64,000 nucleotides of DNA from the NCBI GenBank assembly GCA_002104905.1, contig MCFE01000098.1:62001-126000 (forward strand), read 5' to 3'. Both the position numbers and the translations under genes were made by a program. The notes beneath the pieces are model-generated. The model had not been told where the DNA came from. It worked only from the letters and a program-made list of their open reading frames with translations, and ran no database searches. Position 1 is the first letter of the stretch. Each line of letters opens with the position of its first letter. Below are positions 8,241 through 60,710 of the stretch, piece after piece. Source of the stretch: Basidiobolus meristosporus CBS 931.73 (taxonomy: Eukaryota; Fungi; Basidiobolomycota).

Positions 8241-9309
8241 GGTGATGGTGTACTTTGATCTGTGGTCCAAACTAATAACAGTGCAAGGGCCAATCCATTG
8301 GGGTGCAAATCATGGGCAAAACTTGAGGCCTGCAATGGTTTGGCTGTACCACACCTTATTGCATAGTTTACACTTCTGTCCCGTTGGTTTCTTGTTTTAG
8401 GGTGGAGGGGGAAGGTGCTTGTTGACATTGTCAAATACTTTTACGTATAGATGGGCAATACAGTGTATCAGCCATTCTACATAGTTGTTATGTGTTGTCA
8501 AGGGGACACCTTCCATTGTCAATCCAGCTTCTTCATGCCACTTGGGCCTTTGTCCATACAGAACTTTGTAAGTGGAGAAACCTGTTGTTTTATTTGGTGT
8601 TGTATGCACTGCTAGGAGTGCCAGTGGAAGCAGTTTGGCCTATGACAGGGGAAGTTCCTAGTGAAGCTTCTCTCATCATTTTGAACAAATGGGCCATGGT
8701 GTTGTTCAGGAAGGAGCCACCATTATTGGACAGGAGTATCTGAGGATATCTGTGCCAGCAGATGAGGTGTTCCAGAATGAATTGGGTGGTTGTCTTCTGA
8801 TCTTTGTTTCCAATGGCTGAGGCTTTGACCCACTTTGAGAAATAGTTGGTAGCAATTATTAAGTATTGTTCCCCTTTCATTGCTATCATAAAGGGGCCAA
8901 CAAAGTCAATCCCTACTCAGTGGAAGGGTAGGTCAACTGGTATTGGTGCAGTTGCCCCTATCTGCTGACTCTGGTTAAATTTTTTGCAGGTGGATCATCT
9001 TTATAATGTATTTGTGGCATCAATTATCATTTTTTTCCAATAAAACACCTTTCTTAACAACTTATATGTTGTTAGTGGGTTAGCATATCCTAATGATATA
9101 TATCTTTCTTGAATGAATTCTTCACAGACAGTTACTGGGGGTACCTCTACTCTGAACTGTCCTTGGAGGAACCATAATTGGTTTTTTGTACACTGTACTG
9201 ACACAATTTCCTTCAAAAGTACCTCTTCTGCTTGTTTGTAACAACATGTTTGGGGTACTTTCCCTTTCTCTTAAAGCAGATTACATCCTTGTAGTCATCA
9301 CTGAGGCGT

Positions 9310-10113
9310 TGTGGTGGTGTAGAGGTACTCCTGGGAGAAGCTACACAACTCAAGGTGTGTGAGGTGTCTGATGGGTGCAATAACCTCTTTGTCTAAACTG
9401 CTGGTGTCTTTGTCAATATGTTACTATGGTAAAAGCTCCTGCTTCTCTAGCTTCCTAGGTGCTCCAAGTGTCTCCAAAGGCCTCTGTGTGTCTTGTGCAC
9501 TACCCTGAAAAGCTCCTTGATGGCAGGTCTGAGATGTACTGTTGAAGGCAGGTGCAGTGATCAACTGCTAATCAATAAGGGAAAAGTGTTACTGATAGAA
9601 GGGATGATTTATTGATGAGGGATTGCTTTCCCTTAAATACTTTTCCTGATTGCCAAGTGATTACTAATGACAAGGTTCTAGAAGATTCTAGGTATCAGTG
9701 GAATTCTTGATGACATCACTATGAGCTAAAAATATGCCAAGAATGTCCTGGAAGGTTCTAAAAGGCACAGCACTCTCAACCAATCAGGAATCAGTAGTCT
9801 GTAACCTGTGCAACATAGAAATACCATATATGGTATTGAAATGGTAGAGATGGTAACATAGACCTAGGTCATGTGTCACAGGTACTGACGCGGGTACTTG
9901 CCTTATATAGATACATCTACTGATCACAAAGCTGAATAACATCTGGGATAACTAATGCTAATAACTAATCAGGGTAAACATCATATGGGGATAATACTGA
10001 TAATATGGGCAAAAGAAGAATGGGATAATACTGATAAGATAAAATATGGATAAGTATATCATAATGACTATATGAATAAACTTGTCTGTGGGAGGTATGT
10101 TTACCCTACCACA
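9310..10113 (-). repeat. 3' LTR of element A
   Basis: TGTGGTGG...CTACCACA. Near-identical to 12123-12926. Confidence 0.95.
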
Positions 10114-10123
10114 TCCACCCCCC
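10114..10123 (-). promoter_or_regulatory. Polypurine tract of element A
   Basis: GGGGGGTGGA on the minus strand directly before the 3' LTR. Confidence 0.85.
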
Positions 10124-10191
10124 ACTTGAGCTAAAAAGTTTCAGGGAACTTTTTAGCTAACCACTGTAGGTTTGGAGAACAAAGTGCTCTC

Positions 10192-12048
10192 TCAGTCTTC
10201 CTCAATGAAGCCACCTGTCCTTTCTTGAGATAGAAATCTACATGATGTCATTGATCGGATATTGTTTGAGTCCACACCACAGAAGGTTGCTGTTAGTCCT
10301 GGGCTCTCTGAGTATATAGTATACCATGCTGAACCATCTGGGTAGTTCACTGCAGTTGCTCTTGCTTTTACTTCCCATGGTCTTCCAAGAAGTAATTCAA
10401 AGTTAGCCTTTGCACAAATGAATACTGGGATCTCATGGGGTATTCCTTCAATGATGAGAGGGAAGCTGTGAATAATTCCTAAAAGCTTTGATTGCCCTGA
10501 GTTGGCATCCTTCATGCTCCAATTGATATTGGTGTCTATGGGCAATAAGTCTTTGCATGGTAGTTGTTTCCAAGCCTCCAAAGGCATCACACATATCTCA
10601 GATCCACTGTCTATATGACATAGGATTTCTTGATTATGCACAGTTCCTGTAGTTGTTGCAGTTGCCACTGAGTAGTAGTGTTTCTGGCTTTGATGCAGCT
10701 TACTGATATCTTGGCTTCCTTGAACTGTCCTGACCTGGTTGCCTTGATTTGCTTCAATTGGATGCTTTCTTATTCCAATATGCTCATCCAGAGTCTTTCT
10801 TACAGATGGTGATACACTGAGTAGCTCTCCAACCTTGATTGATATGTTGCTTCCTAGTATATGACTTGTCAGAGCCTCTGGGGTACCATTTTGCTTGACT
10901 CTAGGCTGCATGTGGTAGTTGTTGGCCTTGGCAGACTCTTGTAAAATTAATGGGGGTGATGCTTTCTTCTCAATCACAACTTCTGGCTCACATCTTGGTA
11001 CTTTTGTTACTGGGCCTGGATTAGCCATTTTTTCAGGATGGTATCTCTTTGAAGCATAAATTGAAGCTATATGATCTGGGGCCTCTCTGGGGTCCTCATA
11101 GTCAAAGTTCAGAACTTCAGCTGGATCAAAGTAGTCAGGATCTTCTTCTTCATGGAGGTGAACCTTTCTTGTTTGAGAGGTGACTTGCTTGTAGTGAACT
11201 CTCATTCCTCCTTGTCCAAATGCTGTGGATAATTTGTCACCATGCTTACTGACTATGTATCCCTGAGGACTATATAGGACATCACCTGTGGATAGTAATG
11301 ACTGAAGCTCTTGGCAATTTCTCTTGGAATGGTTGGCAGAGTCACACCACATGCATGTATATTTGACTTCTTTCTCTACTGGCTTCTGACCATATGCTTT
11401 GCTGGCAAGTAGCAAAGAGAGTTTCTCTAGTTGCTGTGTCAGCTCCTGAATTTGAGTGCTTTGATGGCTGGGATTAAGTATGTCTTGGCTCTCTTGGTTT
11501 TGTTCTGGGCTTGAAAGAAGCTTTCTGATTGGTGAGGTTTCTTCAGGGGCAAGTAGAATCTGCTTAGCTAACTGAAATGCAGGCAGTGAACTCATAGCTT
11601 TCACAGTAGGATTGTTTTCAATCCTTCTCACCAGGCCTTCTGGTAGTGCTCTGAGCAGATAGGCAGATAAAGTCAGATCTGTGATAATGCCTTGGGCTTT
11701 CAGTGACTCTCCAATTTGCTCAAGGCCACTCAAGTATTCTTTCAATGGTAGCTGCTTAAACTTGCTATAAGCAAAGTTCTCCAAGTCTTGAAGTGTGTAG
11801 TCAACTTGTCTCTCTCCATATTCATCAATCAAGTAGCTCTTCAAGAGGGTCCAATTTGTCAGCAGATCATTTCTTTCATATAATGAGAGCATGATCTCAT
11901 CAGTGCTGTAGGGGGGCATCTCTTCAGCCATAATGGCCTCAGGTATTTTGTGGGCTCTGCAGAAAAGCTCCCACCTCTTGATGAAAGCTTTAACTTTGGT
12001 TCCATCAAAGAAAGGAGTTCCTTGCATTCCTGGTAAAGGTAGATCCAT
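10192..12048 (-). CDS. Gag-protease polyprotein (618 aa) of a Ty3/Gypsy-type element
   Basis: N-terminal PFFDGTKVKAFIKRWELFC (fungal Gypsy gag type), zinc knuckle CMWCDSANHSKRNC, and aspartic protease HIDSGSEICVM...LLLGRPW. The ORF is uninterrupted. Confidence 0.9.
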   Translation of the reverse strand: MDLPLPGMQGTPFFDGTKVKAFIKRWELFCRAHKIPEAIMAEEMPPYSTDEIMLSLYERNDLLTNWTLLKSYLIDEYGERQVDYTLQDLENFAYSKFKQLPLKEYLSGLEQIGESLKAQGIITDLTLSAYLLRALPEGLVRRIENNPTVKAMSSLPAFQLAKQILLAPEETSPIRKLLSSPEQNQESQDILNPSHQSTQIQELTQQLEKLSLLLASKAYGQKPVEKEVKYTCMWCDSANHSKRNCQELQSLLSTGDVLYSPQGYIVSKHGDKLSTAFGQGGMRVHYKQVTSQTRKVHLHEEEDPDYFDPAEVLNFDYEDPREAPDHIASIYASKRYHPEKMANPGPVTKVPRCEPEVVIEKKASPPLILQESAKANNYHMQPRVKQNGTPEALTSHILGSNISIKVGELLSVSPSVRKTLDEHIGIRKHPIEANQGNQVRTVQGSQDISKLHQSQKHYYSVATATTTGTVHNQEILCHIDSGSEICVMPLEAWKQLPCKDLLPIDTNINWSMKDANSGQSKLLGIIHSFPLIIEGIPHEIPVFICAKANFELLLGRPWEVKARATAVNYPDGSAWYTIYSESPGLTATFCGVDSNNIRSMTSCRFLSQERTGGFIEED

Positions 12049-12101
12049 GGTCTTGATAATTTGTTCTTTCTTAAGTCTTCTAGGGGCAGTTCAGTCAAAC
12101 C

Positions 12102-12118
12102 CCCCACGTTGGGTGCCA
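12102..12118 (-). promoter_or_regulatory. Primer-binding site, tRNA-Lys type
   Basis: TGGCACCCAACGTGGGG versus the canonical tRNA-Lys PBS TGGCGCCCAACGTGGGGC: one mismatch, at a CpG. Confidence 0.85.
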
Positions 12119-12122
12119 AATA

Positions 12123-12926
12123 TGTGGTGGTGTAGAGGTACTCCTGGGAGAAGCTACACAACTCAAGGTGTGTGAGGTGTCTGATGGGTGCAATAACCTC
12201 TTTGTCTAAACTGCTGGTGTCTTTGTCAATATGTTACTATGGTAAAAGCTCCTGCTTCTCTAGCTTCCTAGGTGCTCCAAGTGTCTCCAAAGGCCTCTGT
12301 GTGTCTTGTGCACTACCCTGAAAAGCTCCTTGATGGCAGGTCTGAGATGTACTGTTGAAGGCAGGTGCAGTGATCAACTGCTAATCAATAAGGGAAAAGT
12401 GTTACTGATAGAAGGGATGATTTATTGATGGGGGATTGCTTTCCCTTAAATACTTTTCCTGATTGCCAAGTGATTACTAATGACAAGGTTCTAGAAGATT
12501 CTAGGTATCAGTGGAATTCTTGATGACATCACTATGAGCTAAAAATATGCCAAGAATGTCCTGGAAGGTTCTAAAAGGCACAGCACTCTCAACCAATCAG
12601 GAATCAGTAGTCTGTAACCTGTGCAACATAGAAATACCATATATGGTATTGAAATGGTAGAGATGGTAACACAGACCTAGGTCATGTGTCACAGGTACTG
12701 ACGCGGGTACTTGCCTTATATAGATACATCTACTGATCACAAAGCTGAATAACATCTGGGATAACTAATGCTAATAACTAATCAGGGTAAACATCATATG
12801 GGGATAATACTGATAATATGGGCAAAAGAAGAATGGGATAATACTGATAAGATAAAATATGGATAAGTATATCATAATGACTATATGAATAAACTTGTCT
12901 GTGGGAGGTATGCTTACCCTACCACA
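12123..12926 (-). repeat. 5' LTR of element A
   Basis: Near-identical to 9310-10113. TATATAA on the element strand lies next to the GGTACTGACGCGGGTACT motif. Confidence 0.95.
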
Positions 12927-13280
12927 GCGTACTTGGCAAATGGGATAGCAACTGAGGAAGTCTGCGTCCTGGTGTTTCTTGCAAGTGTATTGAATTATTT
13001 GAAGTTGTATTCTTGTAGTTGGAGGACCCAATGTGCTAGTTGACCAGAAAAGTCTTTAGTTTTCATCAGCCAGACCAGTGCACTGTGGTTTGGTACTATT
13101 GTGAATTGGAAACTATTATGTATGTGGGGAATTGTTTAATTGAATAAACAACAGCCAGATATTCTATCTTGGTAACATGGTAGTGATATTTATGTATTTG
13201 TTTAGCAAATGGCTCATGTAGCCAATTGGGTGAAATTTGCCAGGTTGGTGGTATTGTCCCAGTAGAGCGCCTATACCCAT

Positions 13281-14348
13281 TGTAGTGCGGTGACAGTGAC
13301 ACCCACTGACAGATCTGCTCATTCCCATATTTTCTACTTCCCTATATCTCTACTACACTTATTTTAGTTTTATCACATTTGTCTTACCTGATCAGTACTA
13401 TCCCATAAGCTGGTTGACTATCACACCTGCTTACCTTATTGCATAAGTTATCCCTCACTTTATGTAAGATTACTAGCTGTAAGTGCTTCTATATTAGACA
13501 AGTACCTGCGCCAGTACCCGTGATATGTGATCAACCCATGTCACCATCCCTACCACTTTCATACCATATATGGTATCTGTATGTTACACAGGTTTCAGAG
13601 TACTGATTCCAGATTGGTTGGAAGTGCTGTGCCTCTTAGAACCTTCCAGCACCTACTTAGAACATTCTTAGGTCATTCTGATGTCATTAATATTTTATTG
13701 ACATCTCAAACCTTCTGGAACATCATGATTAGTAATCACTTAGCCTGTAAGAAAATACATAAGGGAGGCTATCCCTCAACAATTAATAATCATCCCTTTT
13801 ATCCATATACCAACTTGTTGATTAGTGTGATTACTGCTACCTGCTACTACTTGGACTTCCAACCCCAGACCACAGGACACTCCCAGGAAACTGCGCTGAC
13901 AGCCAACTGACCTTAGAGGCAATACTTGTGAGGAATACTCAGAGTATGTATCTTTTGTTATATTTGATTCTTTCCCAAGTTTGTTCTTGTACAGGCAAAG
14001 ATACTTTTCTGTCTTTGTACTATTGACCACAGCTGCATTCTTATCAAGTCCCTGATGGTGGAGTTTACAGTTGTTTTGACTTTGAAAGCTTTGGTACATT
14101 GTTGTCTCAAAGAACACTGAACCCAGCACATACTTTTGTTAAGACACCAACTAAGTTGGGGATTGTAGTTCAATAGTTTTCCCTTGACAAGCTTGTGGCT
14201 TTATTCCCCATCACATTAGATTAGAGACAGAGCCCAAGTATTCCTAGCAAGCTTTTGCCAGAGGTTATTGCACACAGTAAACACCCCACACACAATACAC
14301 TTGAGAAGTGTAGGATGTATCTCTCACTTTGACCTATAAACCACCGCA
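13281..14348 (+). repeat. Solo LTR, family B (related to LTR A)
   Basis: TG...CA termini; reverse complement of the LTRs at 36018-38272. TSD CCAT/CCGT. Removing it restores the host RNase H frame D-G-S-L-T-G-I-G-A-L-L. Confidence 0.88.
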
Positions 14349-17507: not shown

Positions 17508-20500
17508 AGACTTGTGTTTATTCTTGCCCATTGAGCAGGTAAATTCATGATCTTAGTAATTGGTCAATATGCTTAGCAAACACACAACCAATTGTGTAGG
17601 AGCAAATCAGATCAAATAGTTGCACTGGTGTTACAGATAATGTATGTATATCCAGCACGTTTATTATAGGGGCTCAGTCTCAGATGTGAGACAACCTTGA
17701 CATTACATGTATCAGAACTTAGCAATCACTGATTTGCAATGGCTTAAATTGGAGTGCAATAAAAACATGTTGTCAGTATCATGACAGGTGGTATCAATTT
17801 AATGAGATTGCATCAGCTTCTCCTAGGTTTTTTTCTCACATGGATTAATACTGAAGTACTTGGCAGAAATTCACTTTGCACACCTGAACTACTTCCATGG
17901 TGACTATCATCCTGTCTGCTTGTGTACTTAAAGTCAGTATTTTGCCTCCTAGTTTATGAGTACAATGCTGGAGCTTGGTGGTGCTGAATTGCCCCAGACA
18001 ATTTAATGGAACCAGTTTGAAGTGCCTCAAGCTGACACATACTTTTACTTGCCAAAGGCTCCAGTGGTGGAGGCACTTCATATGGGTGTAGATTGGACTG
18101 ACATGTGCTGGCATGCTGGCATTGAGGGGGATGGTACAGAATCCAGCAAGGCATGCAAGCAAGATATAGATGCAGTTGCTTGCGGTTTGTACTTTCCTAT
18201 TGAAGCTCACCTTCTGATTCCTCAAGGTATTCACTACCCTCAGTCTGATACTGGTGAACTGTTGCCTTGATGAGTCCTGTGTACATTGCTCTTGAAAGCC
18301 ACTCAGCTCCACTAGTATATCATAAGTACATTAGTCATTTGAGGCAAAAACTCATCAAATACATCTTTAGTTCCCAAAGTTAAAGCACCAACAGATGCAT
18401 CTGGCCCATACCATGCAAATTGCGCATGGAATTATTTGCAAGCAGCATACACATCAATACCCCTCACTCTAAGCTCATTCTTGATTTCAATACCTGTCTT
18501 GTTATATATCTGCATATATAAATCTGCAGGCATCTTGATGCTGCACTCATGTCACCACTGTTGATTCATATTCTTCCATCTCTGTTAACTCTCTGAGGAA
18601 CCCAGTGCTGCTAGATTAATGAGTATTGCCCAAATAACTGTCTGAAGGCACATCATTGACACTTGGGCCATACTAAAATCATTTGGCAATAACTCAAATG
18701 GATCCAATATTAACTTTCTGGTCTGGACAGCACTTGTAAGCTAGGGGATGGGTTTTATATGGTTTGTACTGAAAATGAGTTAAGACTTGGTATGGGGACC
18801 ATAGTGATGATATGGAAACTGATGTTATGATTTTCTACTTGAAGGTTTAAGTTGCATCAGTTGTTTTTTATTTCAATTAGTTATATGATTAGCCTATCAG
18901 TATATCAGTGTTATCTATCAAATCAGTAGCATTAGTTATGATATGAATCAGCATATCCTTATCAGACAGGAATAGATGTATTAAATAGGATCTTATTGGG
19001 TGATGATGACACAATCAAATAAGTCATCAGCCACAACCTACTTTAGGATATACAATTAGTCAGCAATTGATCTGGCAAAAATGTATTTAAGGAGCTGCTG
19101 GAACCACAATAAAATCAGTTCAAGTTTCATTGAATTCAATACTAGCTAAACTCCCTATTCCTCTACAACTCTTATACCAAGACTTGTAACATTGGTAGCA
19201 GCAATAACCTGAAACATCCCTCCTGAAGAAAGACAAAGCCTCCCTCAAGATGTCCAAAAATCAAGAATGGAAGAATGCTATGCAGCAAATCCTGGTCCAA
19301 TAGAAACAGTTACTCCAGATGCTTAGCCAGCAGCAATAAGGAATGACTTCCATGGCCTAAAGCCAGAAAACCCTGTCAAGAGCAACTTTAGTATGAAGTT
19401 CAACTGGTACAATGGTAGGGTCAATGAAAATGTGGAAACTTGGCTCTTCCAGATTTAAGAAGCTTTCAAGGCTAAGGGAGCTGGTCCAGAAAGCAAGTTA
19501 CATTATGCAGCCTCTTACCTGGCATATGCAGCTCTACTGTGGTACTACAACAAGATCAGGTCAGCCACCATGATGGGATGCTCTACAATCTCTACCTGGG
19601 ATGAGTTTGTGTTGGAAATTCAGGATGCTTTTGAACCTCCACACCAGCAGACACTACTAAGAAGAAAGCTGAAGACACTCAGACAGATATGAATGGTTCA
19701 AGAGTAAATCTATGAATATAGATGTCAATCTGGACAAATTGAAAGAATGGACCTCCTGGATCAAGTGGAATACTGTATTGATGGGTTGAATGCAAGAACT
19801 TGCAAGGAAGTGAATTATCAAAGACCCCAGATTTTTGAAGAAGCCATCAAGATTGCCATTAACTATGACTCAGCTCTGTTTGGAGTTGGGAAGCCCACAA
19901 TGACTAATCAGAGAGGCTACAATCACTATGAGACAAAACAATCAGAAGCTGTGCCAACAGAAACAGATGCTATGCAGAAGAATCCTACCTCAGAAGAATG
20001 TAAGAAGAAAGGACTTTGCTTTAATTGCCACCAGCAGGGACATATTGCAAAGTATTGCCCTCAGAGAAGAGATAAACACCAGCCATTAAGAACCCTCAAC
20101 CAAATTGAAGCCCTTGAGCAAAGTAACATGGAGGATGAGCTTGAAGCAGACTAAGAACTCACCTTCCATATAACAGAAGAATACCTATCTCAGATGATCT
20201 CATACTTGGAAAAGCTTTTATATTTGAATGGAGTAATGAATGGAGTACCTGCCAAGATCATGATTGACTCAGGAGTATTGCATGAGTACATGTCAGAGCA
20301 ACTTGCCTTGAAAGCTGGAATCAACTTAGAACTTATCAAGTCAACTCCAGTCTTAATAGCTGATAGGATCTCTCACACAATCAACTGTATTACTCAGCCA
20401 GTAAGGATGAAGATCAATGACTATGAAGAAGACCTACAGGCTTATATATTTGACCCACAGGCCTATTGATTTTGGAACTGCCAGTTTGACCTTGTACTTA

Positions 20501-25597: not shown

Positions 25598-25619
25598 AGG
25601 CCAAGGAACAAGGTTGCCA

Positions 25620-27200
25620 CAGCAAAAACCAGCAGCTTCCTCAAGGGCTTGTCAGCAGCAGGACTGAAGGCTCAAAACAAGTGGCAAAGAAATGTTAGGT
25701 AGTTAGAAGAGTTCTGCTAAGAGACAGGCAGGCAGGTGCAGATGCACCAGTGCAGCATTTATCAAGGAGAGATTGTAGTTCAGTACAAGAAACACTTGGT
25801 AACAGTAGCAGTGAAGAACTTAACAGTAATGCAAACCTACAGCTTTCTCAGGAGCCCATCACACACATGACTGAAAGCTCCAAATAAGTGGTGAAGAAGC
25901 ATCAAGTTGCCATTAGAGTGCTGGCAAGGGGCAAGCTGGAAAAACAGATGCATAAGTGCAGCATTCATCACAAAGAAGATATAGTACAATACAAGAAGCA
26001 CTCAGGCACATTATCAGTGCAGGGCTTGAGAGGGATAAAAGCATGTGGCTTTCTCAGGAGCCCATCACCAGCAGGGCTGAAAGTTCCAAGCAAGTGGCAA
26101 ACAAATGGCGGGTTGCTGGGAGAGTGCTGGCAGGGGACAAGCTGGCAAACACAGATGCACCAGTGTAGCATTGATCAAGGAGAAAGCAGTGAAGAATAAA
26201 AGAAGCACTTAGTCAAAGTAGCAGCAAAGACTTAGAAGTGATATAGATGAAGGTAAGTAGAAAAAAGACTACACAAGCCAGAGACAGAGAAGTGTGCAAA
26301 AAAAGCTGCAGTTCTTGCCAGTTAATGCCATCAGCACAGAACAGGCTAAATCTCATCACAGCCAAGAAGAATTACCAACAAGACAAAAGCTGCTTTCTCT
26401 ATAGCTGGAAGCACAGCCAGTTGAGCTATACCTCACTGAGGTAGATGGGCCTGCAGAGAAAAGCAATTTGTGTACAACTGCCTCCACATCCTCAGGCTGA
26501 AAGCTCCAACAATGGACAAGAAAGCACCAGGTAGCCAGCAGAGTGCCAGCAAGGGACATGCAGGTAAAAACAGATGCATCAGTGCAGCATTTGTCAAGGA
26601 GAAAATGTAGCTCAATACAAGAAGGACTCAGTCATAGTAGCAGTGATGAATTGACAGTGATAAAAGCCTGTGGCCTTCTCAGAAGACCATCACAAGCAGG
26701 GTGGAAGGTTCTAAGCAAGTGGCAAAGGAACATTTGGTTGCTGAGAGAGCACTGGCAAGGGACAAGCAGGCAAACACACCCTTAGAAAAAAATAAGAAAT
26801 GGCCAGCAAAATACTGTCATAATATCAGCTTAATTCCAAGTTTCTCCAAATTGACAACTATCAATATCCCTGTTGGTAGCTGATGAGCAGGCAGGCAAAC
26901 AGGTTTTCCAGGAGGTCAACTGGCATCCATACAAAACTTGGTAATTAGCTGCCCATCACTTCCATCAGAAATTGCATTTGAGATTTTGATCCAGAAATGC
27001 TAGCTGAATACAAGCAAAAACCATTGAAATCAGCTATAAATCAGATGAATTCCAAGTTTGAAATTTTTCATAGGGATAGGTGCACCAGTGTTGCATTCAT
27101 CAATGAGAAAGCAAAATGAAATACAGGAGGTACTCAGTCAAAGTAGCAGTTAAGAACCTGGAGGTGTTAATGGTAAAGGTAGAGAGTGAAAAGTCCACCC
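25620..27200 (+). repeat. Diverged tandem array of ~207-nt (69-codon) units, 5' part of family D ORF
   Basis: (C/T)TTTCTCAGGAGCCCATCA-like anchors recur at ~25633, 25842, 26049 and 26673. Units translate as WLSQEPITSRAESSKQVA...LANTDAPVQHSSRRK.S.IQEALS.SSSE. Confidence 0.6.
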
Positions 27201-28579
27201 AAACCAGAGACAGGGAAGCATGAGAGAAAAGCTGCTGTTCTCACTGGTCATTGCCATGAGCCCACAGCTGGCTGAATCCCATCATAGCCAAGAAGGATTA
27301 CAACAAGAAAACAGTTGTTTCCACATGAATTTGAAGCACAACCAGTTAAGCTGCGCTCCAGTAAAGTAGATGAGTATGCAGAGACAAGTAATTTGTCTAC
27401 AAAAGCCTTTACATCCTCTGTTGTAGACAGAGTGGAGATCCTATTGACAAACAAAGTCACAAGTTAAAGAGCTCAAATACTATCACAATGCCAACAGTGG
27501 AATTTTGGAACAATAATAGTCACACCATAAGGTTGCAGCACTTCTTCAAGAGCGGTGCTTAAGAAAACACATTTGAATATTGGAAGGATTTATTGCAAAA
27601 ACAGGCATATGTGGTGCTAGATCTTGCAGTGCTGGCTGAAAACCAGACTTTATGGGAACCAGTAAATGAATGGTGGTAGAAAGCTCTAGGACTCCCACTA
27701 AAATCATGTAAAAAGGGCATTGCAGCAGAAATACTTATTGGATGGTAAATTTTAATGTAGCTACTTGTTGAGTATGGGGTTGGGCTTAAAGTTAGCATTG
27801 GGTGTAAGGACCTATGTAGGTCAAAACAATTGACAAAGACTTGTTCCATTGTACCATGCCAGGGTATGCGGCACAATCCAAGGTTGTAAAGAATGATTGG
27901 GCGCAATATTATTGCTACCAGAAGGCAGGATTGTTCTTGGATGATTTCGCACTATGCAGGACAATCTTGCACACTATGGCACAATCTGACATGATGAGGT
28001 TGGCATGGATGATTGTGCCAACTCGTAATGTTTGCATCACGTGCGCAATTGGATATTGCTTTAATGGCAGGTAAAATCCGGCATTTGGATATGTTTCTTT
28101 AATGTAAATGGAAATAAATGTGTATCACACTATAAACTACACTGATACTTACCATTTTGGTTACCCTCACTCCAATTGGACGGTATCTCAGTGGTTAATT
28201 GGTCCAAAAGTATCCTGAAGCTGGCAGCCCCCAATTGGCTCATTGACTACTGAAAAAGCTACCTGATTTGCCATCAAATATCCCATTTTGCCCATTGAGC
28301 AAGTCAATCCCTGATCCTAGTGATTGGACAAGGTGTCATAGCTAGCATGCAAGCAATCGTGTAGGTGCAAAACAGATCCAATAGCTGCACTGGTATTACA
28401 GATGACCTATATATATGCAGGGTGTTTATTTAAAGGGGTTCTGTCTCAAATGTGAGACAACCTTGATATTACTTATATCAAAGATTTGATGATCACTGAT
28501 TTGCGATGGCTTGATTTGGATTGCAAAAAAAAAGGGTTGTTGGGATCATTACAAATGTGAGCAATTCAAAGCAATTGCA

Positions 28580-29811
28580 TCATCTTCTCCTGGGTTTTTT
28601 TCTCACAGGGATTACTACTGAAGCATTTGGTAGTGACTCACTTTGCACACCTATACTACTTCCTGGCTGACTATCATCTTGGCTACTTGTGTATTTGTAG
28701 TCAGTATTTTGCCTCCTAGTTGATGAGTGCAATGCTGCAGCTTGGCCGCGCTGAATCACTCCAACTGAACCAACTGAACCAGCCTGTAGTGCCACGCGCT
28801 GACGTGTTCTTTTATTGGCCAAGGGCTCCGGTGGTTGAAGCACTTCATGTTGGTCATCATCAGTCAGTACACCAGAAGTAACTTGCTGATGGTCAGGCAA
28901 AATGGCATGCGCAGGCGCGCCTTGACGCGTTGAGATGGCCCTTGGCTGAGTTTGATGTGATGCCGCATGTTGATGTAACTTGGTCTGCTCCAATTGACTC
29001 GTGTCTAAATGAGCAGTTTGGTGAGTTCCAGTAGTTTTGCTCTGAAGCGCGTGCATTGACTTGACGTGGGGCATTCTGGTAAGGGTGTTGGCGTGGTCTG
29101 GACTGATGTGCGCCGGCGTGCTGTGGTTGTAAGAGATAGTAGGGAATCCAGCAAGGCGTGCTGGTGCAATCTGGACAATGTTGCTTGCGGTCTGTATTCT
29201 TCCTCCTGAAGCTCACCATCTGATTCCTCAAGGTATTCACTTACCCTCTGTCTGATACTTTGGAGCTGTTGCCTGGATGAGTCCTGTGTATATTGCTCTT
29301 GGAAGCCACTTAGCTCTACTAATATATCACGTAGTACATTAGTCATTTGAGGCAAAAACTCATTCAAAATCTCTTTGGTTCCCAAAGTTGAGGCACAAAC
29401 GGACGCGTCCGGCCCATACTGTGCAAATTGCGCGCAAAATTGTTCCCGCGTGGCTTCTTTGTCAAATCCCCTCACTCTCAGCTCATTCTTGATTTCAATA
29501 CTTGTCTTGTTATATATCTTTTTACATACATTGGCTGACATCTTGATGTAGAACTCATGCCACAGCTTTCTACTCAAATTCTTCCATCTTTGTTGACTCT
29601 CTGAGGTATCTAGTTCTGCTAGATTAATCAGTAGTGCCCAAATATCTGTATGAAGGCTCATCATAGACACTTGGGCCATACTAAAATCATTTGGCAAGAA
29701 CTCAAATGGATCCAACATCAATTTCTCCAGTCTGGACCGCGTCTGTGAGCTGGGGGATGGGTTTTGTCTGGGTTGTACTAAAGATGAGTTGAGGCTTGGT
29801 ATGGGGACCAT
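28580..29811 (-). CDS. PHIS ORF2, unknown function (268-aa open frame 29005-29811 plus an overlapping downstream frame ending RKKPRRR)
   Basis: A homolog exists in copy 2, with conserved ELSGFQEQxTQDSSRQQ and terminal RKKPRR. How the two frames join (intron or frameshift) is unresolved. No Myb/SANT domain recognised by eye. Confidence 0.55.
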
Positions 29812-30169
29812 AGCAACAGATTTGGATACTTATACAGCAGTATATTGGCATCTACCTGGTCTTATATGAAATATATATGAAAACTAATGTGATAGTTGAA
29901 TTTTCCATATATTATGCATGATGCATCTTGGATTGCGTTGACACAGATCAGATCACATCAATCACAGATTTCCTATTTGATTATAGACCTATAATTAAAG
30001 CATCAATGAAAGTACCAAGGCATTGTTTGCGGATGATTTTTGCAACATAATGATGGGATACATGGCAATTGATGGAGATTTAACCATAATGTATTAAAAT
30101 CAGACAAATAATGCGGATTGCGCCAAATTGATTCAAACCGCCTCCATACAATCATCCATCAATTTTAAT

Positions 30170-36017: not shown

Positions 36018-38272
36018 TGTGGTGGTGTATAGGTTCAAGGGAGAGATACATCCAACACTTCTCAAGTGTTTTGTGTGTGGGGTGCTCACTGGGTGCAAGA
36101 ACCTCTGGCAAAAGCTTGCTAGGAATACTTGGGTTTTGTATCTAATCTAATGTGATGGGAAATAAAACCACCAGCTTGTCAAGGGAAAACTATTGATCTA
36201 CAATCTCCAACTTAGTTGGCATCTTAACAAAAGTATGTGCTGGGTTCAGCATCCTTTGAGATAACAATGTACTAAAGCTTCCAAAGTCAAAACAACTGTA
36301 AACTCCACCAGCAGGGACTTGATAAGAATGCAGCTGTGGTCAATAGTTACAAAGACAGAAAAGTATCTTTGCCTGTACAAGAACAAACTTGGGAAAGAAT
36401 CAAATATAATAAAAGATACCTACTCTGAGTATTTCTCACAAGTAGTGCCTCCAAGGTCAGTTGGCTGTCAGCGTGGTTTCCTGGGAGTGTCCTGTGGTCT
36501 AGGGTTGGAAGTTCAGGTAGCAGCAGGTAGCAGTGATCACACTAATCAACAAGTTGGTATATTGATAAAAAGGATGATGATTTATTGTAGAGGGATAGCC
36601 TCCCTTTTATACTTTTCTCACTGGCTAAGTGATTACTAATCATGGTGTTCCAGAAGGTTCCAGAGATCAATGGAAATCTTAATGACATCAGAATGACATG
36701 GGATAGTACTGATTGGGTAAGACAAATGGGATAAAACTAAAATGAGTGTAGTAGGGATATAGGGAAGTAGAAAATAAGGGAATGAGCACATCTGTCAGTG
36801 GGTGTCACTGTCACCCCACTACAGCGCAAGAACAAACTTGAGAAAGAATCAAACATAATAGACTTGTTCCGTTGGATAGTGCCACATTGAGCCATGAGTG
36901 CCAAATGATGCCATAGTGTGCCAGGGAGGCCAAGTGAGCCTAAACTTGGCCACAGAGTGTGGAACATAGATCTGCATCTTCATGCAAAGCAGCCCCTGTG
37001 TTTCACTCATTGCAATGGAGAAAATCCATTTTTTGACCTTTTTTTTTAGGTAAATGTTGTACAGGATGCGCAAGAGCACTAAAGGATTGAAGATAGGCAT
37101 CTGGTACTCAAAACCCATGGCACTCTGAATCTAGCTCCTGTGGCTTGTAACATGTCACAAAAATGCATGGCACTATCTTGGTCCACTGGTACTATCTGGC
37201 ACTATATTTAAATATTAGCCCCAAAGTAAGATCAATACACAGCACTTATAGTGCCAGATAGTACCAGTGGACCAAGATAGTGCCATGCATTTTTGTGACA
37301 TGTTAAAAGCCGCAGGAGCTAGATTCAGAGTGCCATGGGTATTGAGAACCAGATGTATATCTTCAATCCTTTAGTGCTCTTGCACATCCAGCACAATATT
37401 GATCCACAAAAAAACATCAAAAAAGGATTTTCTCCTGCATCATAGGTGAAACACAGGGGCTGCTTTGCATGAAGATGCAGATCTATGTTTTGCACTTTGT
37501 GGCCAAGTATAGGCTTGATTGGCCTCTCTGGCACACTATGGCATCATATGGCACTCATGGCTCAATGTGGCACTATCCAATGGAACAAGTCTAATAAAAG
37601 ATACCTACTCTTAGTATTCCTCACAAGTAGTGCCTCCAAGGTCAGTTGGCTGTCAGCATGGTTTCCTGGGAATGTCTTGTGGTCTGGGGTTAGAAGTTCA
37701 GGTAGTAGCAGGTAACAGTGATCACACTAATCAACAAGTTGATATTTTGATAAAAGGGATGATGATTTATTGTTGAGGGATTGCCTTGCATATATACTTT
37801 TCTCATTGGCTAAGTGATTACTAATCATGGTATTCCAGAAGGTTCTGGAGATCAATAGAAATCTTAATAACATCAGAATGAGCTAAGAGTATTCTAAGCA
37901 TGTGCCATAAGGTTCTAAGCAGCATAGCACATCCACCAATCAGGAATCAGTACTCTGAGACCTGCTTAACATAGGGATACCATATATGGTATGGAAATAG
38001 TAGGGATGGTGACACAGGTTGGTCATGTGTCACAGGTACTGGCATGGGTGCTTGCCCAATATAGAAGCACTTACAGCTAGTAATCTTACATAAAGTGAGG
38101 GATAACTTATAAAATAAGGTAAGCAGGTGTGATAGTTAACCGGCTTATGGGATGGTACTGATCAGGTAAGACAAATGGGATAAAACTAAGATAAGTGTAG
38201 TAGAGAAATAGGGAAGTAGAAAATATGGGAATGAGCACATCTGTCAGTGGGTGTCACTGTGACCCTGCTACA
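36018..38272 (-). mobile_element. Composite of family-B LTRs (36018-36823 plus a partial LTR 36828-38272) inserted in the Copia RT
   Basis: 4-bp TSD CCAT on both sides. Removing it restores KSLHGLKQSPRTW. GCGC lies at the internal junction. Confidence 0.8.
36860..37592. mobile_element. Non-autonomous foldback MITE (two ~346-bp inverted arms, 40-bp spacer) with PHIS TIRs
   Basis: Arms are 36860-37206 and 37247-37592. Perfect AAT TSD inside LTR B; the empty site is seen at 36401-36420. Confidence 0.88.
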
Positions 38273-45199: not shown

Positions 45200-45990
45200 A
45201 TAGCCTGACAATGTACACCAACACAGGGGATGATTAAGTGACTGGGGGCAGAAAGTAAGAGAAATGGCTGGGAACTAATCGGTATCAACCTAGGGGCCAT
45301 TGTGATGAAAAATTCTGACTAGGTTTTTGTGACATCTGAGGTGGATTGTTTTCCAACAGTTTTTGCATGGTGTCCTAATGGCATAAATGCCTTTGAGTCA
45401 TGGAGTTCAAATCTTGTGACAGCCTTTCAGCAGGATCAGCACAGTTGTTTTTCATAGGGCACATGGTACAAATGTACAACCAAAATACAGCTGGTAGCCT
45501 ATGATCCAGAGACTCTCATGATACTGCCATATGTTAATAGTTATATGGCTTTCTTATCAGAAAATGCTGCTATGGCATGATGTCCAACTTGCTAGAAATC
45601 CACCACAACTGGGGAAAGACATTGGTCACATTCTGGATACATTCTTGTAATACCCCCATCCAGAGAAGCTCATGCAGTCTGGCACATATTGTGAAGCTAT
45701 CAAGTACTGCATTTAGCATCAATCAAGTGCAAACATTAGTGATATATTTGATGGCAAACATTGCAAACAACTAAGGATTAGGGACTGTTGAGATGAGGTA
45801 TTTTGACTGAGTTTTTTGTGGAATCTGAGGCACAACTTTTCTTGGGCAGTTTTTACAGTGTCCTGATAGCATCAACACTATTTGGCCACAGGATTTAAAC
45901 TTTGTGATGAGGGTTGGTTGTTGGTCACAGGTACTCTTTCTGGGTTTCATTAAAAGCTCAACCATGGACTTGAAATCCCTCTCAGTGGAC
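45200..45990 (+). mobile_element. Scrambled CACTA transposase (45480-45780) and family D fragments at the edge of the TE block
   Basis: 45480-45780 is the reverse complement of 7050-7270 (DIFDGKHCKQL). Flanking segments match the family D motif FAWCPxGIN. Confidence 0.55.
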
Positions 45991-46719
45991 ACCTTCCTAG
46001 TTACAGGTCATAACCTAACATTCATGTAGATCTACCCTACAACAGCTCCCCGCAAAGCAAGCGAACTCTCTGTAGGAAACCCCTCCCCAAACAAGCCCTA
46101 ATCCAATTTTGAAGAGTCAACTTACCACCATATTCCAGCCTCTACTTGTCTCATGCATTAACACGTCCCATCTTAAGCAAACACTACCAGGGCAGCAACA
46201 GCCCGGATTTATTCAAGCAATCCATCCTACGGGAAGATCATGTGATGGCCGGAAATGAACCCACGTATGTCCCGATTTCCCATTCTCCGACATGTCTGGC
46301 ATGTTGGGGCCCTACTGAAGATGCGGCTACCCGTGCAACAAACGAAGATCGAAACGGTATTGGAAGGGACGGGAACCTTGAGGTGTCAGAGGGAACCCAT
46401 TCGATCACGCCATCGCTCATCACCAGGTGGCAAATCAAGTGATCCGAACTCACACACCGTTGTAACTTGACCAATCTCGGGAAGAATCAGGCGATTGGCG
46501 AGAGGGATCCCCGTCGTAGCTACCATGATACCAAACCCGGTTGGTCCAGCCGATACCCAGTTACCTTGGGTATTTAAGTTAATAATAACCGCGATGCAGC
46601 GTAAAAATATCAGCACACGACCGACGACTCGCGTCACTCATTGGCGAGGGGTTATTATTATCCTCACTCGGTAGGGGAATATATATAAGGTGCGTGACAA
46701 CCTACGGACTTGGGTAACG

Positions 46720-59051: not shown

Positions 59052-60281
59052 TTATTGTATGTTGCACTTCGGGGCTGGTGACACTTCTCTGGCACCAGGA
59101 GACATGAGGTCCTCGATGTCTGCAGTCCCGCAGTCTGCATTGGCGCCTCTCTGGGCCTGGGTCTCGAGTACGAGTTGTCCGCATGCTCCGGAAACATCCT
59201 GGCCTTTTTCCTGACGAACGGTACAGCGAATGTTGTATTTGTTTTTCAACGTGTTCTTGAAATATTCTGTGCTCTCAGCTCCGGGGGCACTGAACTCAAT
59301 TTCTGGGCTGTAGATTGGGTTCCAGGGAATCAAATTCACCGTGACATCTCTGTCCCTGAGAAGCTCGCCGAGCTCGTCGATATGCTCCGGTAGATCGTTG
59401 ACACCGGATAATAGTACATACTCGATGAACACCTTATTCCCAGTCTTCTCCTGGTAGGTGTCAATGGCCCCCATCAATTTGTCTAGTCTGTATGACCGGG
59501 CACTAGGGACCAACTGCTCTCGGATTTCCTGGTTAGGGGCATGCAACGATAGCGCTAAAGACACTTTGGGCAAGTCAGTTGCGAGCTTCAGAATGTAAGG
59601 AATAACGCCAACAGTGGATACGGTCACTCTAGAAGGCTTGAGGCCAAAGTAACGAGAGTCAATCATGAGTTTGACTGCTTGGGTGACGTTCTTGTAGTTG
59701 TTGAGAGGTTCGCCCATGCCCATGAATACGACATTACGGATGTCCGCTTCTTTTCTCGCGTGCATCAGTTGCTCAACAATTTCGGCTGCGGTCAGATTGC
59801 CTTGGATTCCCATGGTTCCGGTCGCACAAAAGGTGCAGGCCATTTGGCAGCCCACCTGACTAGATATACACAAGGTGGCTCTTCTACTTGTACCATCAGC
59901 AACCAATTTTGGCTTCGTCTCCCCCTCCGAGGCCTCATCGTTCTCGGGGGCAGGCTTTAAACTTAACGGCTCGTAAAACATAATGACCGACTCCACTTCC
60001 AAACCGTCTTGCAAACGAACAACCAGCTTGATGGTGTCACCCGACTTGGAGACTTTCTTATGGATTACCTTACTCGTGCTGAGTACGTAGTTTTGGGACA
60101 GATAGTCCTTCGCCTTCTTTGGGAAATCCACAATCTCGTCATAGTCAGTGGCGGAGCGAAGAATGAGATTGGAATATAGGCTATGAAGATGCTGGGGGCG
60201 AATCTTCAACTCCTCGAACGCTTCTTCTACCGAAGCTTGGTCGAATATGGACTGGGGATTTAACACTCTTTTGGGTGGCAT
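59052..60281 (-). CDS. rlmN: RlmN-type radical-SAM RNA methyltransferase, intronless, ~409 aa (an upstream in-frame ATG is at 60347)
   Basis: CISSQVGCQMACTFCATG (CxxxCxxC plus the first catalytic Cys), NVVFMGMGEP, TVSTVG, LALSLHAPN, EYVLLSGVND, NLIPWN, and GACGQL (second catalytic Cys). Confidence 0.92.
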   Translation of the reverse strand: MPPKRVLNPQSIFDQASVEEAFEELKIRPQHLHSLYSNLILRSATDYDEIVDFPKKAKDYLSQNYVLSTSKVIHKKVSKSGDTIKLVVRLQDGLEVESVIMFYEPLSLKPAPENDEASEGETKPKLVADGTSRRATLCISSQVGCQMACTFCATGTMGIQGNLTAAEIVEQLMHARKEADIRNVVFMGMGEPLNNYKNVTQAVKLMIDSRYFGLKPSRVTVSTVGVIPYILKLATDLPKVSLALSLHAPNQEIREQLVPSARSYRLDKLMGAIDTYQEKTGNKVFIEYVLLSGVNDLPEHIDELGELLRDRDVTVNLIPWNPIYSPEIEFSAPGAESTEYFKNTLKNKYNIRCTVRQEKGQDVSGACGQLVLETQAQRGANADCGTADIEDLMSPGAREVSPAPKCNIQ

Positions 60282-60710
60282 GTTGTTCGACTGGACACGC
60301 TCGTCACGTATGAACTTTAAGGTTGGAAATTTTTTTATTTTTTTCATTTTCCAGGGATTTTTTCACCAGTGAGTGCATCCGTCCTGTGGGGATCATTGGT
60401 GGGGAATTCACATGCGGCGATTCGTGATGGTCCGACGCAATATTGATTGTGAGGATAAACCTTAAATCTCCGATGCGATTTCTCCTAGCCAGATTGAAAC
60501 ATACACACACACTTGGGCGTCAATGGCGCCAAGGCTCCGTGACTGTTTGTAGCTCTTGGTAGCTGATTTCTACAAATCATGGGCTACGGCCTGTTTGTCT
60601 CCACTTGGTACAGTCAGGTCAATGCAGATCATACGAATTTGAAGAGAGATGAAACAAAACTCCACCATCCTACCAATGAACATCAGGTGTTGCCCTTGGG
60701 ATGTATGGTG

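Follow-up and report, generated by a model that had tools for sequence, protein, structure and literature searches.

A nearly CpG-free gag-protease retrotransposon within a CpG-depleted transposon compartment of Basidiobolus meristosporus

Hypermutation of repeats at TpCpG sites has been described in Microbotryum and in the rusts (PMC3318451, where the TpCpG hypermutation of Hood 2005 is cited), and in transposable element (TE) lineages of Microbotryum TpCpG is scarce at non-synonymous positions (PMC3318451). Horns et al. 2017 proposed that TE variants freed of hypermutation targets may be favoured by selection (PMC5381629). In Austropuccinia psidii, young insertions are richer in CpG than old ones, CpG being lost with age (bioRxiv 10.1101/2025.05.29.656941). 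B. meristosporus possesses CDCA7F, which according to the study concerned is accompanied by HELLS and nearly always by DNMT1 (PMC10538959). Our search of the literature for CpG depletion of Basidiobolus transposons found no report of it.

The locus described here lies in a 64-kb window (the whole stretch of DNA that was analysed) and is like the Microbotryum and rust system (PMC3318451, PMC5381629) in that the effect is restricted to repeats, consists of C to T changes at CpG and is strongest where a T precedes the CG. The idea of surviving TE lineages that have shed their targets applies here as well. It differs in three respects. Basidiobolus is an early-diverging fungus (Zoopagomycota), whereas the other system belongs to the Pucciniomycotina; all CpG contexts are depleted 10- to 100-fold, beyond TCG alone; and the shedding is essentially complete in a young and intact element, unlike in Microbotryum and the rusts. 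With the TE-targeted CG-methylation decay of A. psidii the locus shares a TE compartment that is CpG-poor, GC-poorer and rich in TG and CA, while the genes are spared. The element itself is the opposite of the A. psidii case, as an insertion with 99.6% identical long terminal repeats (LTRs) is already CpG-free, and the depletion therefore sits in the active lineage. The locus illustrates, cleanly and in an extreme form, a principle that was known from other hosts.

TR-GAG elements, which are known from plants, have LTRs, a primer-binding site (PBS), a polypurine tract and a single ORF with a GAG domain, and are devoid of reverse transcriptase (RT) and integrase. The Basidiobolus element, which spans 3617 bp on the minus strand (9310-12926; Table 1) and whose LTRs have the termini TGTGG...CCACA, follows the same plan of LTRs, PBS, polypurine tract and one ORF without RT or integrase, and is presumably mobilised in trans. 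It differs from TR-GAG elements by its intact aspartic protease and its fungal host; its gag ORF is intact and pol is absent. With 618 amino acids the gag-protease ORF is the longest of the 46-kb compartment in which it lies, the runner-up having 335. Alignment with relatives along the entire ORF showed that all invariant residues of gag and protease are present and that a GRPW motif (residues 555-558) is retained, and a Pfam search of the ORF gave weak matches only (DUF4100 and Asp_protease). RT, RNase H and integrase were not found in the element: the alignment stops where the relatives enter RT, and a gap of only 78 bp separates the stop of the ORF from the 3' LTR. The element is non-autonomous because these three are absent, and it is a young copy of a TR-GAG-like retrotransposon derived from Ty3/gypsy, with gag and protease only. 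No second copy of this gag-protease family was found within the 64-kb window.

Table 1. Coordinates of the element, its parts and the surrounding compartment (positions of the window)
Feature	Position	Strand	Remarks
CpG-depleted transposon compartment holding the element (context)	1-46100	.	Nested transposons, CpG observed/expected (o/e) 0.07 overall
Target-site duplication GCGT, left copy	9306-9309	.	Same 4 bases at 12927-12930
3' LTR	9310-10113	-	804 bp; 801/804 identical to 5' LTR
CGCG (in ACGCGG), 3' LTR	9889-9892	-	Same motif as in 5' LTR
Polypurine tract AAGTGGGGGGTGGA (element strand)	10114-10127	-	Adjoins 3' LTR; read from sequence
Gag-protease ORF	10192-12048	-	618 codons and stop, 1 CG
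Sole CGN codon, CGA = Arg598	10255-10257	-	Arg also in most aligned relatives
Protease catalytic D-S-G, residues 480-482	10603-10611	-	D480 and G482 invariant in alignment
Gag CCHC zinc knuckle (C232, C235, H240, C245)	11314-11355	-	Invariant columns in alignment to relatives
PBS TGGCACCCAACGTGGGG	12102-12118	-	TGG-initiated, 17 nt, 4 nt past 5' LTR
5' LTR	12123-12926	-	804 bp, TG..CA termini; direct repeat with 9310-10113; 2 CG vs 31.9 expected
CGCG (in ACGCGG), 5' LTR	12702-12705	-	17 nt downstream from where TATATAAGG (12722-12714) starts; sole CpGs of the LTR
Target-site duplication GCGT, right copy	12927-12930	.	Same 4 bases at 9306-9309

The ORF, with a GC content of 42.8%, contains a single CG where 84.8 are expected (o/e 0.012), and the CGs of the whole element amount to six (9889, 9891, 12702, 12704, 12107 and 10256). 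An earlier note on this DNA had given one CG for the 1857-nt ORF and six for the element, with Arg encoded mostly by AGA and AGG, and these counts were all correct on recount, the Arg codons being AGA (18), AGG (4) and CGA (1). None of the 141 NCN codons of the ORF is an NCG, and a C at the third codon position is never followed by a G at the first position of the next codon, against 36 expected cases. This deficit is enormous compared to base composition, but it is not unusual compared to the local background: 18-20% of the 1857-nt stretches of the 46-kb compartment hold one CG or none, and the median is 3. The o/e of the ORF is nominally below the 0.05-0.07 of the compartment background.

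Along the compartment, the CpG o/e per 2 kb ranges from 0.01 to 0.12, with the exception of the region from 28 to 30 kb, and the o/e of TG and CA is 1.2-1.6. Values of 0.04-0.11 were found for dead transposon debris, 0.04 and 0.11 for the 5-kb flanks of the element and 0.06 for its non-coding LTRs. The copia and Harbinger elements of the window have open stretches with no or one CG, in which Arg is encoded exclusively by AGA or AGG. At ~46.1 kb the sequence shifts within 250 bp to genes, with a GC content of ~50% and a CpG o/e of 0.7-0.95. The host ORFs of the window have a CpG o/e of 0.7-0.85 and use CGN for 44-69% of their Arg codons. One of the neighbouring genes encodes a radical-SAM protein with 85% identity to a protein of Basidiobolus ranarum, in agreement with a Basidiobolus host.

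Over their 804 positions, the two LTRs show three differences (9618, A/G; 9859, T/C; 10100, T/C). None of these differences is a change from CG to TG or CA, and the CGCG is intact in both copies. As the differences are few and none is CpG-derived, the LTRs already had 2 CG instead of ~31 expected at the time of insertion. This supports the view that the CpG depletion is older than this insertion and is a property of the lineage.

The lost CpGs have left their transition products. In the compartment as in the ORF, the CpG deficit is matched by an excess of TG and CA, the 84 CG missing from the ORF facing a surplus of 82 TG and CA. When a paralogous pair was aligned (28.3-29.8 kb, with an o/e of 0.45, against 17.5-18.8 kb), CG corresponded to TG six times, to CA eleven times and to CG twice, and related LTR fragments show a matching CG/TG/CA pattern at homologous sites. 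The losses are also graded by context: in the TE compartment TCG has an o/e of 0.008 and the other contexts have values of 0.045-0.10 (ACG 0.045, CCG 0.07, GCG 0.10). This excess loss of TCG is a feature of the repeats and not of the genes of the window, where the o/e of TCG is 1.05. The element at 28-30 kb is intermediate, as it has lost TCG (0.08) and retained GCG (0.96). Transition products and context grading are the mark of a mutator that hits non-coding and dead DNA equally, as expected from mutation pressure combined with purifying selection. To account for a depletion of this extent, no selection on the coding sequence to be CpG-free has to be invoked.

The explanation that we favour, with a probability of roughly 0.7, is a CG-directed mutation process that has acted together with purifying selection over many transposition cycles, a concept already published for Microbotryum; the present state would have come down from the source copy. 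The observations behind this explanation are the counts, a loss that preceded insertion and extends over the region, the transition products, the preference for certain contexts and the contrasts that the element forms with host genes and with its relatives in other genomes. A mutator changing C to T at CG would be aimed at repeats and not at genes, either by deamination of methylated CpG or by RIP-like TCG hypermutation. Copies hit at harmful sites would drop out over many transposition cycles, whereas transposition would continue from copies whose CpG losses fell at tolerable sites, and from copies with AGA or AGG instead of CGN for Arg, and the active lineage would thus converge on a sequence without remaining targets. 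We infer the enzyme or enzymes behind this process, the part of methylation proper and the advantage that the shedding of targets would give to the lineage. Selection was needed to preserve the protein while the CpGs were lost. A signature of selective filtering within the ORF, in the form of a preferred synonymous decay route, was not clean, as synonymous and non-synonymous decay products are enriched alike (each ~1.4-1.5-fold) and the baseline of the host genes is similar. The ORF contains 3.2% His and 5.8% Gln, compared to 0.4-1.9% and mostly 1.5-3.8% (7.3% in one case) in its relatives, which hints at a decay of Arg codons but is confounded by the AT-rich genomes of the relatives.

The earlier note went further and proposed that the lineage had become CpG-free under selection. 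On this reading, positive selection keeps CG methylation off the body of the element, which thereby escapes silencing as well as mutation; we consider this rather unlikely. Such selection would agree with a heritable state that predates the insertion, with the position of the remaining CpGs at plausibly functional sites and with the ORF falling nominally below dead DNA in its o/e, and it is of the kind that Horns et al. 2017 had in mind (PMC5381629). The Arg codons also speak for it. AGR-only usage is not obtainable by deamination and needs transversions or the loss of CGN sites, and 22 of the 23 Arg codons of the ORF, among them those in columns where Arg is conserved, are AGR, so that deamination alone is insufficient. 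Genuine selection against CpG may therefore have played a part, and the codon usage fits selection among copies against CGN codons, since every such codon carries a constant danger of a harmful hit. However, the LTRs and the dead fragments are as depleted as the ORF, which lies inside the local distribution; the losses are TG and CA, with the context hierarchy typical of a mutator; and the promoter region of the LTR keeps a CGCG that methylation could still reach. The part of the proposal that concerns loss at the level of the lineage is sound, being borne out by the LTRs, the intact motifs, the simulation described below and the CpG-bearing relatives, whereas the data give no sign of selection for escape from CG-methylation silencing, which is not needed either.

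A phmmer scan of 1.84 billion representative proteins with the ORF yielded 656 relatives, the best with 28% identity (E 2e-39), and the best relatives were Ty3/gypsy polyproteins of Smittium and Furculomyces (Harpellales, Zoopagomycota). Those of Smittium culicis (OMJ18467.1), S. simulii (PVU90090.1) and Furculomyces boomerangus (PVU87237.1) are homologous to the ORF over its full length, in gag as well as protease, and the CCHC, DSG and GRPW motifs align; identity is only 22-29%, and they extend into RT, RNase H and integrase, whereas the ORF ends just past the protease. A length-limited protein word search with the ORF gave no match, none of the ORF and six other ORFs of the window was present in a public protein collection by exact look-up, and a scan of viral contigs found no relatives of the ORF. 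Eleven distant metagenome relatives (22-34% identity, GC content 37-45%) have a CpG o/e of 0.19-0.84 in the homologous part and use CGN for 19-67% of their Arg codons. The earlier note had conceded that its case would fall if relatives in genomes without CG methylation were equally CpG-poor, and these eleven, whatever their hosts and the methylation of these hosts, are not. As distant relatives elsewhere keep CpG, the CpG-free state is specific to this genome. We give very little credit to a CpG poverty that is intrinsic to the family or was imported by horizontal transfer from a CpG-depleted donor. Two distant relatives do have low o/e values (0.19 for L010 and 0.35 for L011), but most lie at 0.5-0.84 and use CGN codons freely for Arg. 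Moreover, the copia and Harbinger elements of the window, which belong to unrelated superfamilies, are equally CpG-free, and this implicates the host genome and not the family.

Slightly less credible still is a decay after insertion, or a single burst of hypermutation, that stripped this copy and left its ORF open by luck. CpG transitions give stops only at CGA codons, and an open frame is thus possible. When unfiltered CpG decay was simulated on CpG-normal relatives and on two host genes, 1.5-6.5 new stops arose in the relatives, with a probability of no stop between 0 and 0.12 (the upper value for one relative), and 3.0 and 0.5 stops arose in the two host genes, the probability of no stop reaching 0.5 for a host gene. 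Full decay in the simulation altered 3-9% of residues, whereas the invariant residues of the ORF are all kept. In the LTRs, the TG excess (+28) is far larger than the CA excess (+1.5), and strongly strand-biased mutation would keep the two copies alike; yet ~29 CpG sites per LTR would have needed identical conversion, with zero discordant sites and the same two CpGs spared. The ORF has an excess of both TG (+44) and CA (+38), which indicates that both strands were mutated.

An RNA-level CpG sensor similar to ZAP, of which we know no example in fungi, was dropped as a candidate, non-transcribed debris being equally depleted.

The CpGs that are left in the element, i.e. the CGCG of the LTRs, that of the PBS and that of one conserved Arg codon, are probably found where they are needed. 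The LTR CGCG stands beside the TATATAAGG TATA box and probably serves as a core-promoter element. In two diverged LTR relatives, the corresponding alignment columns read CTGCG and CATG; CGCG was therefore the ancestral state, retained in the live lineage and decaying in dead copies. The PBS holds one CG, at 12107, and matches at 16 of 17 positions what we take to be the 3' end of a metazoan-type tRNA-Lys(CUU) (tRNA-Lys1,2); at the one mismatch, the element strand has CA in place of CG, and the tRNA of the host may differ from this type. No tRNA gene was found in the window, and a search for other PBSs of tRNA-Lys type revealed only this one in the window and none in the fetched loci of relatives. 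After the second strand transfer, the tRNA is the origin of one PBS strand and genomic RNA that of the other. The statement of the earlier note that the PBS is templated anew from tRNA in each cycle, from which it would date the mismatch to after the insertion, is thus only half true, as it applies to the first of these strands and not to the second.

In this genome, a CG-directed defence has run out of targets in elements that nevertheless look capable of moving, and a low CpG content is therefore no sign that a transposon is old and dead. Age estimates, and TE annotation, that rely on the decay of CpG or GC would be misleading here. The CGCG adjoining the TATA box of the LTR offers a concrete candidate site for methylation-based control. 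It is possible, and we put it forward tentatively, that selection among copies has led the transposon lineages of Basidiobolus to lose all the CpGs they can do without, and that they are invisible to a CG-specific methylation or hypermutation defence while still amplifying, with young copies and intact ORFs. If so, CpGs would be kept only at the core-promoter CGCG and at the tRNA-templated PBS, and the arms race would have run to completion, in an early-diverging fungus from which no such defence has been described. Should methylation data show such copies to be free of 5mC, Basidiobolus would offer a convenient natural system for asking whether transposons can outrun a methylation or hypermutation defence by shedding its targets.

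The boundary of the CpG-depleted transposon compartment, which occupies the window from position 1 to ~46,100, is very abrupt: CG dinucleotides rise from 0-1 to 17-20 per 250 bp across ~250 bp, and the GC content rises from ~0.40 to ~0.52. Beyond it lie host genes, including an RlmN-like radical-SAM gene, whose top named match is in Basidiobolus ranarum (85%), followed by the green algae Myrmecia, Coccomyxa and Trebouxia (52-55%), with chytrid matches lower (42-44%). This ranking is taxonomically unusual for a gene in a fungus.

Within the compartment, one repeat copy was found in an intermediate state of CpG loss. Its TCG sites are almost lost (0.08) and its GCG sites untouched (0.96), and the older paralogue carries TG/CA at matching sites. 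A 268-amino-acid ORF within this copy had no Pfam match.

Features of the window
Feature	Position	Strand	Remark
Element, 3' LTR	9310-10113	minus	804 bp
Element, gag-protease ORF	10192-12048	minus	
Element, 5' LTR	12123-12926	minus	804 bp
Target-site duplication of the element	9306-9309, 12927-12930		GCGT
LTR fragments	13391-13803, 36523-36696, 37748-38065		73-78% identity to the element LTR
Paralogue of the repeat copy	17524-18823		
Tandem array	25613-26778		inside the compartment; period ~206 bp, copies 64-82% alike
Repeat copy	28288-29833		CpG o/e (observed/expected) 0.45
ORF in the repeat copy	29005-29811		
Compartment boundary	45750-46500		
RlmN-like radical-SAM gene	59052-60347	minus	

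The nearly CpG-free gag-protease LTR retrotransposon (the element) is flanked by a duplicated tetramer centred on CG, and the DNA around this target site contains CG at just ~3 per kb. The three LTR fragments are sister families; they have in common with the element LTR both the TATA box and the site of the CGCG motif, which holds the only CpGs kept in that LTR.

The protein encoded by the element ORF has a high content of His (3.2%) and Gln (5.8%): in the aligned relatives His makes up 0.4-1.9%, and Gln 1.5-3.8% in all but one of the nine, which has 7.3%. This comparison is confounded by the AT-rich genomes of these relatives. His and Gln codons are the G-to-A products of CGN arginine codons. 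The CpG-decay products in this ORF are symmetric between the strands, unlike those in the non-coding LTRs. On the plus strand of the LTRs, TG is in excess (81 vs 53 expected) without a matching excess of CA (44 vs 42.5), so that G-to-A changes predominate on the sense strand of the element. This asymmetry could be noise, or a step with strand bias could underlie it, for example deamination linked to cDNA or to transcription.
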